The notes under the pieces were generated by a model. The model saw only the letters and a program-made list of their open reading frames with translations. It made no database searches and was not told where the DNA came from. A stretch of DNA of 6,656 nucleotides from Zygophlyctis sp. KS116 (taxonomy: Eukaryota > Fungi > Chytridiomycota): positions 1 to 6,656 of the forward strand of contig BAAFSQ010000430.1 of assembly GCA_054661495.1 (NCBI GenBank). Reading direction: 5' to 3'. Positions 1 to 6,235 of this stretch are shown here, piece by piece. Each line of letters begins with the position of its first letter. Positions within the stretch are counted from its first letter, which is position 1. The position numbers were made by a program, and so were the translations under genes.

Positions 1-862
1 AGTCATATACACCGCCTTGGAATATATGATTGGATTCCTAAAATGCATCAATTAGTTCTTTCCACATTTACATCACTCTCTATTGATATACCAACTTATC
101 TTTTCGCTGAAGATCCTAGGAACCCACCTCAAATTGTTACAAAAGCCCAATCTTTTAATGTTCTTGTGGGAATAATGCAAAGAGCCGGTTATTATCCTTT
201 TACTCAGGTAAAATTAAATTTTAGTTTATACTAGCTGGATACCAATGATCCTGAAAAAATAGCTCATAGCAAAAAGAATCCAGACAGTAATTAACTTTTT
301 CCTAATTTTTAGAAAGATTTTTAGAAGTTTGGCTTATTAATGTATTTGGTGATTTTTTCAAAATGGTTCAACCTGCTCTTCCACAATCATTTAATCACTA
401 TCCGATTGTATTTAATTTATATTTTAAAATTAGCCACAACTTTTCAATTTATTTACTGTAACTATTCCAAACTTGGCATTTGGATTAAAACTGCAGATTG
501 CATCTGTAAGACAAGTAAGTAAACTCACTGATTTACCAAAAAAAATGGTTGTTCATTTACAATGGGTTAATCAGTTGATGGGATGGATCAGCCCTTTTTT
601 AGTATTTTGCAAGGATACTTCTGTTTATCTATTTAATTACACAATTACACCCCCATTAATAATTTCGGGACCTCAACTTCGAAAGATTCAATATTTTCGG
701 AATGGAGTTTCTAATGCAATCACGTTAATTAGAAATCATATTACAATGTCTAATCATATTGTTGGACTAATGTCTTCTAGTTATCAAGGTAAATCAATGG
801 ATGGTGGAAAGCGCAGAGAGGTTATAGACAGAGAGTCTAGGTTGAGATCTAGATTGTCTTGA
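1..862 (+). CDS. 3' part of a hypothetical protein gene, join(<1..207,235..286,313..407,434..862)
   Basis: Frame 1 is open from base 1 (SHIHRLGIYDW...YPFTQ). Three GT..AG introns (208-234, 27 nt; 287-312, 26 nt; 408-433, 26 nt) join track ORFs 43..234 and 473..862 into one continuous frame ending at TGA 860-862 (...RESRLRSRLS*). No family recognised. Confidence 0.75.
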
Positions 863-920: not shown

Positions 921-2115
921 ATGGAATTGGCGATTTCATCTCGAGTCGGTAACAATCTTTTCTAACGATATCATAGACAAGGGATTATCTAAAGGTCCCA
1001 ATGTAGCACCTAGAGTCAGACCAAGAGTCAAAGCAGTGGAAGAGCCAAGGAAAAAGGCAAAAGTTGATGAGCCACTTCCAGTCGTTGAGGAAATTGTTCA
1101 AGAGGAACAACAACAAGAACCAAAAACTATCGATACATCAATTCAAATGGGAAATATTATAAAGGTTCCAGAGATGATCACTCCTCTGGTTGCTGCTGCT
1201 CCTACAGTCGATGAATGTCCAATTATAATGAAGGATTTGATCAAATCAAAGTTTCAAACTGGAAAACTCTCAAAGAGTGAAGTTGCTAGACGTCAATTAA
1301 AGGCAGAGAAGAAAAAGTCTATTGTCAAGGATGTTATCAAGGATGAAGTAAAGGTTGCAGAAAGTGTTGAAAGCTCTCCAGATGAATCATTACAGGCTCC
1401 TAGAGGTCCACAATTGAGACTTGTTAATGGTCAAATGGTAATTGATGAAAATTCTCTCACTGTTGCTACCGAAAAGGAAAAGGTGGATTTTCAGAGAATA
1501 GAAGAAGGTACGGCTCGGTATGTTTCTTCAGCTTCTTTTCGTTTGCGTCCAAGAACTGCTAGAGTGAAATGGACTCCAGAACTCACAGAACTCTTTTATG
1601 ATGGGCTATCATACTTTGGAACAGATTTTGGATTAACTGCATTGTTATTTCCGGGATTTTCAAGGAATGTTATAAAGTTGAAGTTTAATCATGAGGAAAG
1701 GACAAATAGCTCAAAAGTTAATGAAGCTTTAATGAATAGAAAAGTTCCAGGAGAAGATTTAAAAATGATTATGAAGTCTAATTTAACTTTGAATTTGGAA
1801 AAGGAAGAAGAATCTACTCAAGCAAAAAATTCTTCAACTCAAAAGAAATCAAAGACTGGAGTTCAAGACGATAAAGAAAACATTCAAGAGCAGGAAGAGA
1901 CAGTCCCTGAAAATGTTCAAGAAGCTATTAAAGAATCTCCAACAATTGTGGAGAAAGTATTTCAAGAAACTGCCCAAAGATCATTTAAGGACGCTATTGA
2001 TAATGTTCAATCAATTTCATCTAGTTTTTCAAAGACTAGTCAAGGACCCAAGATTGCACCCAGGGTGTCTAATCGTCCTGCAAGGAAACCCAAATCAGAT
2101 GCTACATGTGATTAG
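921..2115 (+). CDS. BDP1: Transcription factor TFIIIB B'' subunit (Bdp1), join(921..948,977..2115)
   Basis: Contains the Bdp1-type motif GPQLRLVNGQMVIDENSL followed by the SANT/Myb-like domain KWTPELTELFYDGLSYFGTDFGLTALLFPGFSRNVIKLKFNHEERTN. ATG at 921 (AAAATGG context) and a 28-nt intron 949-976 (GTAACA..CTAAC..TAG) give the in-frame N-terminus MELAISSRVDKGLSKGPNVAPRVRPR. The track start at 1036 is an internal GTG. Confidence 0.92.
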
Positions 2116-2260: not shown

Positions 2261-3271
2261 TTACTGCCTGTTTTTGTAAGCCCCAAGTCTTTGCAATGCT
2301 TCATCATTTATCTGAAATGCCCATCCGTTTCCACGAACTTTTCTAATTTGTAAATATTTTTGGCATACAGTGATGTTGGAATTGGAAAAATCCATTCTTT
2401 CCATGTTTCACCCAAAACAGATCTAATATTCCCTTTCCAACCTAAATTATATACATTTCTTTCAAACTCTGTTCCAGCTCTTGCCACCAATAATCTCCCA
2501 GCCCCTTCCATATATTCAATCGTTGTTAGATTATTTAAGAGTAAATAAACATGCATCCCACCAAAAACCATCAAACTAAATGAAAAGGCACCTGAAACAA
2601 TTAATAGCATCAGCAATTCAAAGTTATTAATCACCATAAATGACTATAATCACGATCATAAATCTTTTAAAATACCTCTTCCAGAACCAAATGTAAAGCG
2701 ATGAAAAATATAAACAATGAGTAGCAGAATGCATAAAACAAGAATTGAAAAAAGTATTTATCTAAAACCTATGTTTAAAAGTCTTACAATTATCAAATCC
2801 CAAACAATTATTCATCCATGGACAATGATGGTCCATCTTCAAAATGCAACGAGAACAACTTGAACAATGATGAGTCCTATCTGGCTTTACAAAGTTACAT
2901 TTTGAACAAAACCGCGGCTAATACTTTAAAATCAGCAGTGCTTACTCTTCCATTCCTTTTAACTTGAAGAGAAATAAATTCCTGATTTAAGCCATTCTCC
3001 ATTTCATCTACCATCCCGTTTGGAGACCCGGGATGTGTCATTATAGTTTTATAATAGCAAGTCATCATAACCATAAATAAACCAATCGGCGCCAAAATCA
3101 TCCCTTTGAATCGCATCAGGGGAAGTATTGATCCAAGTATTCCGATCATTGACCATACTATTACATTCAGAATTTACTACTTTTACTCATAATTGCTACT
3201 AATATTACAATCGGACTCCAGTAAAATGCCTTTATCATCAACAAGAGCCCAGTTTTACAAGCTCTTTTCAT
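2261..3271 (-). CDS. DHHC-type protein S-palmitoyltransferase (Pfa3/ZDHHC2-15-20-like), complement(join(2261..2342,2369..2643,2676..2761,2788..2917,2946..3157,3187..3271)), 289 aa
   Basis: Spliced translation gives two N-terminal TM segments, THPGSP, the cysteine-rich domain [46 protein letters not shown], two more TM segments, TTIE, and [26 protein letters not shown]. Five GT..AG introns of 29, 28, 26, 32 and 26 nt; exons sum to 870 nt in frame. Confidence 0.93.
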
Positions 3272-3796
3272 AGACTGTATAATTTCACGTTCCGCACAGT
3301 TCGTAATCAATTTACGCCACTGCGGAAAGTATATTATAGTAGCGTTTCCATTAGATCTCCTCATGCTAAATGTTAACGTATAGTGCAATTATGAGCCTAG
3401 TGTCTCTAGAAAACATAAAAAACATAAAAAATCTAGAAAGAAATCTGTAGAAAAAGAAAATCTCAAAAATCTATTAATTACAGTAGAAGCATCGCTAGCA
3501 AATTTAACAATCGTTCTTGACAAGATACAAACCAGAAACAAGCTCAAGATTTCCTCGTGAAATATTTCTTCGTTACGATCAGTCTATCTAAAGACAAATC
3601 TCAAAGAAAATCTAATAAACGTCAACGAATAAAACACTTTCTTATCAAACTAGCACTGATTTCTCTTAAAAAATAACAATTCTATTGACACATTTCTTAA
3701 AATAACTGCATGCCAAGCCAACATCACAGTGTTCACCGTGTTGTTTTTCATTAAGCATGTTTTGGAACTCAATACACAATAATTTCTGAATGGTAC

Positions 3797-3804
3797 AAAG
3801 TGAA
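3797..3804 (+). repeat. 8-bp target-site duplication, left copy
   Basis: AAAGTGAA directly before the left TIR, identical to 5723-5730. Confidence 0.95.
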
Positions 3805-3817
3805 CAGGGCATATCAA
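3805..3817 (+). repeat. Left terminal inverted repeat of the hAT element
   Basis: CAGGGCATATCAA, the exact reverse complement of 5710-5722. Imperfect similarity extends to about 33 bp with 5 mismatches. Confidence 0.95.
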
Positions 3818-3863
3818 AATATTATTGCAGTAGAATTGCTCGGAATAATTATAGACAAATATA

Positions 3864-3961
3864 TTATTGCAATTATTTATTAACTTCCAATCAATTATTG
3901 CAATTATTTATTAACTTCCAATCAATTATTGCAATTATTTATTAACTTCCAATCAATTATT
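3864..3961 (+). repeat. Left subterminal tandem array, 31-bp unit x about 3.2
   Basis: TTATTGCAATTATTTATTAACTTCCAATCAA occurs exactly at 3864, 3895 and 3926, followed by a partial copy. Confidence 0.95.
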
Positions 3962-5546
3962 TCCCACACCCTTAACAACTTCAGCAACGGTCTGCACATT
4001 CCATAGTCCCTTGTTAACTCGTAAATACAGTATCATTTCCAACGTTTGTGGAAGCAACTTTCGCAAATCACTCCAAACCAAACCCGCTAATGAAAACAAA
4101 CGTTCGCACACGTTAGAAGTGGCAACTATTGCCTCTAAACCTTCATAGAAGCCTTTTATTATTTTATACGCTAATGTAGCCGTTGGCTTCTGTGGTGAAA
4201 TCTCAACAGCGCAACTTGGATTTACCTCCTTTTTAAACTTCCAAAGGACCTCTTGATTTAATTCGGTAATAGCCAAGGGGTTATCTAAGATGCTCCGAGC
4301 TGCAGTGATAAAGTCTAAATTTCGTCCATCGACGTAATCGTCAGTGCAAAATTTCTTGATAACATCAGTCCACTTTTTTTCATCCAATTCTTTCATTAAT
4401 TCATCGATAGCATTCTTAGCATCCAAAATATTTAAGTCTGCCGTTTGAAGATAAATTGTGCAATCATTTACAATCTTTAGCTTTTTGTAAATCTCATAGA
4501 GATTATCTCTTGTATCATCATTTGGAATCAATTCAAGAAATTCTCTTTGCACTTGCTTAGTTGAGAAGTTCTTGCTCACTTTCCCAATTTCTTTCACTGC
4601 CTCTTCAAAACTAACTGCCTCTCCATCACCTTCTCGAAAATATCGTTTGACCATATTAAAAGTAGAACTCCACCGAGTTGTATTTCTCTGAACCGGTGCA
4701 AGGTGGCATTTATGGCTCCTCATTAAGGCCCTCATCTTCGGACTCGAGAGCTTTACCTACCGTCAACCAATAATTATATTACCATCAATTTATGGATATC
4801 ATCCAAACATTCCAAATCAGCAGATGCTATATATAAATTCACTGCAAGTGCCAAACGGTGCGACATGCACCCTATGAAAGGGACGTTTAGGATTCTTGCA
4901 ATGCATGGATTTGTCTCCGTATTGTCTGAAACCATGAATGCAATGCATTCTAAAGATTTTCCATAAAATGATAATGTATCCTGAATAAATTCGCAGGTAG
5001 TTTGAGCATTTTGTGAAGTTTCGTCGCCCATGGGAGAGCAAGCTAGAAGATATTGCTGTAGTTTAGATATTGCTGTAGTTTACCTGTAGTTTATCAGTTG
5101 AAAGATCAACAAAGCTTGCATAAATTGCAACAAAATGAGTTCCACTTTCAGTCCAACCGTCAATTACAATACCGAATGTTTTAGGAAGAATCTTGGCCAT
5201 TTTCTGTTCTACTTTACGCAACAAAGCAACTATGTACTTTTTGAGTGTGTTTACAGAAATACTTCCTTGCCCATTTATTTTCAACAAACATAAAAGGCTG
5301 GTTGGCGAAAACTATACCCTCAATCCATCCGCAGATGCCAATATCTTTTTGATCAACTTGAACCGAAACACCCAAGGCGGCTATACGATTCTCTTTTTCA
5401 TTATTTTTTGCGGATTCGAGAATTTCATTTACGTTGTCATGGCCGATTGCATGCGTTTTTAGATTCGTGTATCCCGTTTTATCCTTGATTTCATCAAATA
5501 AATGAGTCTTGTAGTCCATAGGTAAGAATTCCGTCTTGGTAGTCAT
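3953..5546 (-). pseudogene. hAT transposase, about 513 codons, two introns (5056..5083, 4757..4782), one frameshift near 5255-5265
   Basis: Motifs in the expected order: partial BED-finger tail TGYTNLKTHAIGH, FGIVIDGWT (D1), MVSDN (D2), GCMSHRLALAV (CxxH), TRWSST, and ATSNVCERLFS..LEMILYLRVN (catalytic E and C-terminal hATC domain). The frame changes between WARKY and ISVNTLKKY and I found no GT..AG pair that repairs it. Confidence 0.9.
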
Positions 5547-5579
5547 TTCGAAATTTAAAAAAAAATTCAGCTCTAAAAA

Positions 5580-5665
5580 TCTAAAAAATCAATTATTGCA
5601 ATTCTCAAGCTCTAAAAAATCAATTATTGCAATTCTCAAGCTCTAAAAAATCAATTATTGCAATT
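5580..5665 (+). repeat. Right subterminal tandem array, 31-bp unit x about 2.8
   Basis: CTCTAAAAAATCAATTATTGCAATTCTCAAG at 5610-5640, with a near-complete copy at 5580-5609 and a partial copy at 5641-5665. Confidence 0.95.
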
Positions 5666-5709
5666 ATTTTATTGCAAAATATTGCAGATAATTGTATTGC
5701 AATACAATA

Positions 5710-5722
5710 TTGATATGCCCTG
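5710..5722 (-). repeat. Right terminal inverted repeat of the hAT element
   Basis: TTGATATGCCCTG, followed immediately by the TSD AAAGTGAA. Confidence 0.95.
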
Positions 5723-5730
5723 AAAGTGAA
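5723..5730 (+). repeat. 8-bp target-site duplication, right copy
   Basis: AAAGTGAA directly after the right TIR. Confidence 0.95.
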
Positions 5731-5738
5731 TTGTATTT

Positions 5739-6235
5739 TTAGTAACATATGCGGGGAACATTCGTACTATTCGGCTGTATACATATTTTCGAAATGCAAT
5801 CATCATTTGAAGAACAATAATAACCACCATATCCAAGACACTTATTTTCATGACATTTCAAATTCTTAGTATAATAGCTAGAACTTTCGCACTCAGCATG
5901 TCCTGATGTACAGTATTTACTTTTGCACTCTGAATCCACAGTACAATATCCTCCAAGTGGAACAGAATTGTCTACTGGAAAATAACACTTGTTTTCGTCC
6001 AGATTACAGTATTTGGAAGCGCAGTCAGAATTTTCGTGACATTCAGAGCCAAGTTTGGCCTTGCACTTCATACCAGTCTTGGTACCCACACACGTTAATC
6101 CATCCGCACAATAGCCCTGATAACATGCCTGATCTAAAGTTGGTGCCGTTGGTCCACCATCACCCCAACTACCACCTTGCCCGTAAACAACATTAAACAA
6201 TGCAACATTCCAACAGTCAAAATAGTAAATTTCAC
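5739..6235 (-). CDS. Small cysteine-rich, probably secreted protein (18 Cys); 5' end appears damaged, possible pseudogene
   Basis: ORF 5739..6200 has three G-x-x-C-x5-C-x-S-K-x-C repeats (GSECHENSDCASKYC, GGYCTVDSECKSKYC, GYYCSSNDDCISKIC). There is no in-frame ATG upstream of them. A signal-peptide-like leader (V)KFTILTVG/VALFNVVYG begins at GTG 6235 and is split by a 1-nt frameshift near 6207. Confidence 0.7.

Follow-up and report, generated by a model that had tools for sequence, protein, structure and literature searches.

The window analysed here, a stretch of 6,656 nts from the chytrid Zygophlyctis sp. KS116 (contig BAAFSQ010000430.1), contains the gene BDP1, a DHHC palmitoyltransferase-like gene and a decayed hAT element. 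The best named matches of BDP1 are in Boothiomyces and Terramyces (35% identity), which places the host among the chytrids, probably near Rhizophydiales. A large host gene has three adjacent introns of 26-27 nts (208-234, 287-312 and 408-433, forward strand) that are precisely absent from a related species (L062:3285-3560). This species shows about 68% identity in the neighbouring genes and apparently shares three upstream introns of the same gene; adjacent loss through cDNA or three gains could explain this difference. Beyond the element, a 153-aa cysteine-rich ORF (5739-6200, reverse strand), with no Pfam match, has its stop 9 nts from the target duplication. The genes and the parts of the element are as follows:

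921-2115, forward strand: BDP1 gene, one intron (949-976)
2261-3364, reverse strand: DHHC palmitoyltransferase-like gene, five introns (2343-2368, 2644-2675, 2762-2787, 2918-2945, 3158-3186)
3797-3804, reverse strand: right copy of the 8-bp target-site duplication (8 shared letters at the empty-site joint)
3805-5722, reverse strand: decayed hAT element, 1918 bp, with inverted repeat; empty site in run X4
3805-3817, reverse strand: 3′ terminal inverted repeat
3863-3961, no strand: subterminal exact 31-bp array, 3′ end
3953-5546, reverse strand: broken transposase coding region, catalytic Asp at 5159-5161 (DGW) and 4924-4926 (SDN)
4757-4782, reverse strand: native 26-nt intron of the hAT family, at the same position in L058, L059 and L065
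5580-5665, no strand: subterminal exact 31-bp array, 5′ end
5710-5722, reverse strand: 5′ terminal inverted repeat, 13 perfect nts, 46 nts at 76% when extended
5723-5730, reverse strand: left copy of the 8-bp target-site duplication (8 shared letters at the empty-site joint)

The 8-bp target-site duplication and the short terminal inverted repeats, which start with CAG, place the element in the hAT superfamily (oomycete/chytrid-type, with BED, DDE and dimerisation domains), together with the DGW, SDN, CxxH and E motifs. Its relatives match PF05699 (hAT dimerisation, 7/34) and PF02892 (BED), and the transposase pieces of the window, which have no Pfam match of their own, keep the hAT motifs. 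Unlike autonomous hAT elements, the window copy is decayed, and its family carries tiny introns of its own. The 12.7-Mb assembly contains no second close copy, but about 20 more distant hAT loci. The 31-bp arrays at the two ends have a common core motif and are likely, as putative subterminal repeats, to bind the transposase; an exact array of this kind is missing from the 5′ end of the related element L059. An internally deleted derivative of the element, with a joint from 4135 to 5478, is present in run X5.

The coding region is interrupted between the two catalytic aspartates by 28 nts that have the form of an intron:

5084-5093, reverse strand: end of the upstream exon, 10-nt template, two copies of which lie in the insertion
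5083, reverse strand: single non-templated G, source of the donor
5056-5083, reverse strand: 28-nt insertion, candidate new phase-0 intron (GTA donor, CTAA at -11, CAG acceptor)
5049-5055, reverse strand: start of the downstream exon, 7-nt template, one copy of which lies in the insertion

Read on the reverse strand from 5093 to 5049, the order is the 10-nt unit, G, the 10-nt unit with 7 nts, and the 10-nt unit again with the identical 7 nts. The earlier note had described the insertion as one G plus exact 17-nt and 10-nt copies of the flank, and this is reproduced at the same coordinates: 27 of the 28 nts can be traced to the flanks with zero mismatches, and the two copied units have a common first base. 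Tandem Repeats Finder reports a period of 17 (5048-5082) and a period of 11 (5073-5093), each at 100% match, and the 18-nt tandem run at the insertion exceeds those of all 200 simulated sequences (maximum 16, mean 8). Eleven equivalent placements of the 28 extra nts are possible, and of these the last alone, 5083 to 5056, starts with GT and ends with AG. The added G makes the donor, the duplicated copy supplies the acceptor and the join gives the branch-like motif, all as first proposed. If left unspliced, the candidate intron introduces an in-frame TAA; once it is removed, DKLQ-QYLLACSP is read between the aspartates of DGW and SDN, as had been noted, with the length found in L059. The further claim that removal restores the frame holds for the 28 nts themselves, as it would for any insertion that is removed, but the frame of this copy is already broken upstream, at 5258/5259.

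The repeat structure is all that could favour an assembly artefact, which the earlier note had named as an outcome that would undo its reading. However, the 28 nts are identical in independent assemblies, namely L060 (ENA ERZ28594211), L067, L068 and run X3, the last of which contains one 1678-nt contig at a depth of 265 with zero differences from the window. Furthermore, the repeats are shorter than the assembly word of 31. L068 and X3 may come from the same sample as the window, and L060 and L067 represent different haplotypes. An artefact is hence extremely improbable and was ruled out, and the insertion stands.

The splice signals of the candidate were compared with those of the host. Twelve host introns, homology-checked against a related species, served as reference; a self-trained gene model and a profile-guided aligner, both noisy on dead copies, supplied candidate introns only, which were then homology-checked. 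All 12 are 26-32 nts long with GTA..TAG ends, a range within which the 28 nts fall, as had been pointed out. The candidate has the features of a U2-type intron of this host (GT..AG, GTA donor, YTRA at -10 to -13, 23-33 nts), and its CTAA at -11 occupies the modal branch-like position of host introns. It contains the sole nearby GT, and its acceptor is the sole one 23-33 nts from that GT. It ends in CAG, whereas 12/12 host introns end in TAG, and it is GC-richer, at 32% against 8-32% in the host introns. With a weight-matrix model trained on a small set of 25 host-type introns (33 when those of hAT elements are added), the candidate scores at the 20th percentile of the 25 real introns and at the 45th of the 33, and outscores 139 (141 with the 33-intron model) of 143 exonic decoys, defined as GT..AG stretches of 23-32 nts in 5 kb of checked exons. 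Among simulated duplications of 24-32 nts in this element, 7.7% can be removed as GT..AG and 2% as GTA..AG, and a score this good is reached by at most 0.1%, under a null of simple duplications and for a candidate picked by eye from the whole genome. Taken together, the splice score and the simulation raise the odds that the insertion is a real intron, short of settling the matter. On these sequence features, the 28 nts would somewhat probably be spliced out if the element is transcribed.

The earlier note had proposed an alignment with related elements as a check of intron gain, and the outcome supports a gain. The relative L059 (~80% identical) shows a gap of exactly 28 columns at the insertion and has no intron there, and the other hAT families of the genome are open across the site. 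Because the outgroup lacks precisely these nts and the other families read through the site, the 28 nts are interpreted as gained; an old intron later overwritten at this position was rejected, since it is absent from every relative. The evidence thus supports an insertion that is real, derived, recent and templated from its flanks. All copies of at least about 99% identity that span the site, representing four haplotypes (window/L068/X3, L067, L060 and X4), contain at least the G + 10-nt part, and no insertion-free copy at ~99% identity was found among these four. Likewise, no close insertion-free copy was found in JGI metagenomes, GTDB, IMG/VR and cluster look-ups, in which the protein length range left out a full-length intact allele (~290 aa to the first native intron). 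The samples in which this sequence was found are all freshwater, and no RNA run was found to contain it.

The copy carrying the insertion bears four other lesions:

5477/5478, reverse strand: BED finger CxxC segment (about 50 nts) deleted relative to L059; extra letters in X4 record 14 and at the X5 joint
5258/5259, reverse strand: 17-nt frameshift deletion between two 6-nt direct repeats; X4 keeps the 17 nts, and the deletion is common to L060
4153-4173, reverse strand: remnant of a second native intron, whose donor and preceding exon were taken by a 74-nt deletion at 4173/4174; L060 keeps the 74 nts
4056/4057, reverse strand: 3-nt deletion, the latest lesion, absent in L067, X5 and X7

The frameshift at 5258/5259 lies upstream of the first catalytic Asp. 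With this frameshift, the missing BED CxxC and the 74-nt deletion, no intact transposase frame exists after splicing, and the window copy is predicted to be unable to make transposase even with the 28 nts spliced out. Since the carrier has decayed, splicing of the 28 nts would not be under current selection. L060 keeps the 74 nts and L067 keeps the 3 nts, and both bear the insertion, which is therefore older than these two deletions. The window, L067 and L060 are two deletions apart with zero substitutions in 1.3-1.7 kb, and indels appear to outpace point changes among these close haplotypes. Over 3805-5722, a comparison with L060, L067, X4, X5 and X7 shows very close haplotypes that differ by several deletions and almost zero substitutions.

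A partial state of the insertion is present in run X4, which comes from a separate study. One lake contig (contig 13) covers 4993-5287 at a depth of 2.5 with one mismatch to the window; only the 17-nt unit of the insertion is missing from it, so that G + 10 nts (11 nts) remain, and it retains the 17 nts deleted in the window at 5258. Judging from record lengths, other X4 contigs would carry extra letters at the positions of the BED and 74-nt losses of the window. The X4 copy is apparently otherwise intact, as pieced together from records that are separate contigs, possibly of different copies. Because X4 shows an empty site at the locus of the window, with 8 shared letters at the joint, this copy is probably elsewhere in the genome.

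The X4 sequence alone fits equally well either one complex insertion with a later partial collapse or two successive steps. In the latter case, an 11-nt frameshift as in X4 would have come first, through slippage that duplicated 11 nts with one change or through a 10-bp target duplication plus a G left by Mutator-like excision, and a 17-nt duplication would then have produced the spliceable 28 nts, a compensatory intron birth rescuing the element. Contig 13 is exactly the intermediate that such a history predicts. Mutator elements typically produce target duplications of 9-11 bp, and at least 10 MULE matches are present in the genome. However, the evidence for the intermediate is one contig at a depth of 2.5, the same few bases would have to be altered by a second event, and collapse of perfect direct repeats of 18 nts is presumably a much more frequent mutation. 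In addition, the 11-nt state is a frameshift that splicing at the next acceptor, at +24, would not correct; with no nearby acceptor that repairs the frame, it would seem beyond rescue by splicing. A two-step origin is hence distinctly unlikely. A single origin of the 28 nts followed by collapse in the X4 lineage is favoured, because both units start at one base, because a perfect direct repeat of 18 nts readily collapses, and because the contrast between an otherwise intact X4 copy and the four deletions of the window lineage would be easier to explain with an ancestor that still worked. The claim of the earlier note that a templated event gave an immediately spliceable intron thus stands as regards flank templating, recency, good splice signals and host-typical size, but in view of the 11-nt haplotype in X4, birth in one step is one of two histories.

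We therefore favour, with a probability of roughly 0.5, a history in which one break repair made a spliceable 28-nt intron, the transposase stayed usable, the element moved and its descendants decayed. A single error-prone repair, by iterated templated insertion of the alt-EJ/SD-MMEJ type, would have copied the flank twice from a single start and added one G. The 28 nts would have brought a donor, a branch-like motif and an acceptor at host intron length, allowing precise removal by the spliceosome. The transposase would thus have remained usable despite the insertion and the element would have kept moving, before the window lineage decayed through four deletions and the X4 lineage through collapse of the perfect 17-nt repeat. 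One family-A polymerase match, at G000:C49:21033-21779, and two Ku genes were found in the genome; Pol theta was not identified beyond that single family-A match. Replication slippage, or a Mutator footprint followed by duplication, are possible alternative mechanisms. Against the favoured history stand the CAG end and higher GC content of the candidate and the predicted inability of the window copy to make transposase. In addition, dead hAT copies are moved in trans, as the internally deleted derivative in X5 illustrates; occurrence of the insertion at several loci is therefore no proof of function.

A real, though lesser, possibility is that repair left a neutral scar in an hAT copy that was dead or non-autonomous: a frameshift that was never a working intron and whose GT..AG ends and 28-nt length are a coincidence among many small duplications. 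The four other lesions of the copy and the excess of indels over substitutions agree with this possibility, as do a perfect 27-nt duplication in the hAT element of L034 that lacks GT..AG ends and the 7.7% of random 24-32-nt duplications that are GT..AG-removable. Conversely, the score obtained in at most 0.1% of simulated simple duplications, the lack of an insertion-free close copy among the four haplotypes and the otherwise intact-looking copy in X4 argue against such a scar.

Tandem duplication and break repair are established or proposed routes of intron gain (PMC3443670), and cases have been described in the fungi Neurospora (PMC4317165) and Cryptococcus (PMC2395259), as well as repeat-flanked gains in Drosophila (PMC2809761). 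As in tandem genomic duplication, the candidate consists of exon sequence duplicated locally, and its removal restores the coding sequence exactly. In contrast to that route, there is no parental AGGT and no copied old intron, the donor being the added G and the branch-like motif the join; two nested copies are present instead of one duplication, and the length is 28 nts against about 100-600 nts in the fungal cases. A classical AGGT duplication was rejected, since the insertion-free junction is CAG-CAA and the insertion does not consist of a single tandem unit of 28 nts. With break-repair gains, the candidate shares a short direct repeat that overlaps both splice sites (10 nts here, 5-12 nts expected; 0-4 nts in 25 host introns) and a likely end-joining origin, whereas the filler in those reports is mostly unknown or mitochondrial and here 27 of the 28 nts come from the flanks. 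Synthesis templated repeatedly from the flank, with one odd base, is a signature of SD-MMEJ/alt-EJ (PMC7407515), and templated insertions of the alt-EJ, SD-MMEJ and TMEJ type resemble this case in their flank-templated repeats, their apparently untemplated base and the microhomology deletions in the same element. In the literature searched, they are reported as mutation scars and not as a source of complete introns, and no intron gain of this kind through templated insertions is described there, within the incomplete coverage of that literature. Introners share recent intron gain with this case; an Introner was rejected because the 28 nts match once in the genome (by a search that may miss very short matches), originate from the local exon and show nothing that would point to intron mobility. 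Gain of an intron assembled entirely from repeated copies of its own flanks is hence a variant of known duplication and break-repair gain.

Most new introns cannot be traced to a source, as their sequence had drifted before discovery (PMC3443670). Here, the filler is fully traced without mismatch, and both an intron-free outgroup and a partial state exist in public data, which makes the insertion, as far as its sequence goes, a clean candidate for intron birth, albeit a single one and within a transposon copy that is dead. Were such events frequent in genomes with introns of ~27 nts, the rate of intron gain would be determined by intron size itself.

A broader reading is that, in a tiny-intron chytrid lineage, flank-templated duplications are intron-sized, so that single repair events regularly yield complete, precisely spliced introns, and that transposase genes record a series from new perfect cases (the window insertion and the 28-nt array of L013) to family-specific introns of greater age, in which longer boundary repeats persist. 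Both parts together are doubtful at present. In 97.6 kb of hAT-rich loci, five exact duplications of at least 12 nts were found (the window insertion, the L013 array, the 27-nt duplication of L034 and two 31-nt subterminal arrays), along with near-perfect duplications of 10 to 64 nts. The hAT loci L007, L011, L012, L018, L041, L058-L060 and L066 have family-specific introns of 23-30 nts at differing transposase positions, and such gains therefore do become fixed. No flank-derived sequence was found in the 12 host introns (longest match 4-8 nts vs 18 in the candidate). Terminal direct repeats average 3.3 nts in 13 hAT introns vs 1.1 in 25 host introns (p = 0.0002, in a hand-checked, non-independent set in which the AG|G context alone may explain the difference).

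Several of these loci deserve a brief description. In L013 (G000:C159, around 1839-1919), a 28-nt unit occurs three times in another broken hAT transposase; each extra copy is GT..AG-removable, with a low splice score, weaker than that of the window insertion. The perfect 27-nt tandem duplication of L034 (1459-1513, G000:C156) lies in a dead hAT element at nearly the same protein position as the 28-nt insertion. Finally, L065 (about 1920-1950, also in L064), a decayed relative of the window element, carries a 20-nt GT..AG insertion with a 9-nt copy of the upstream exon.
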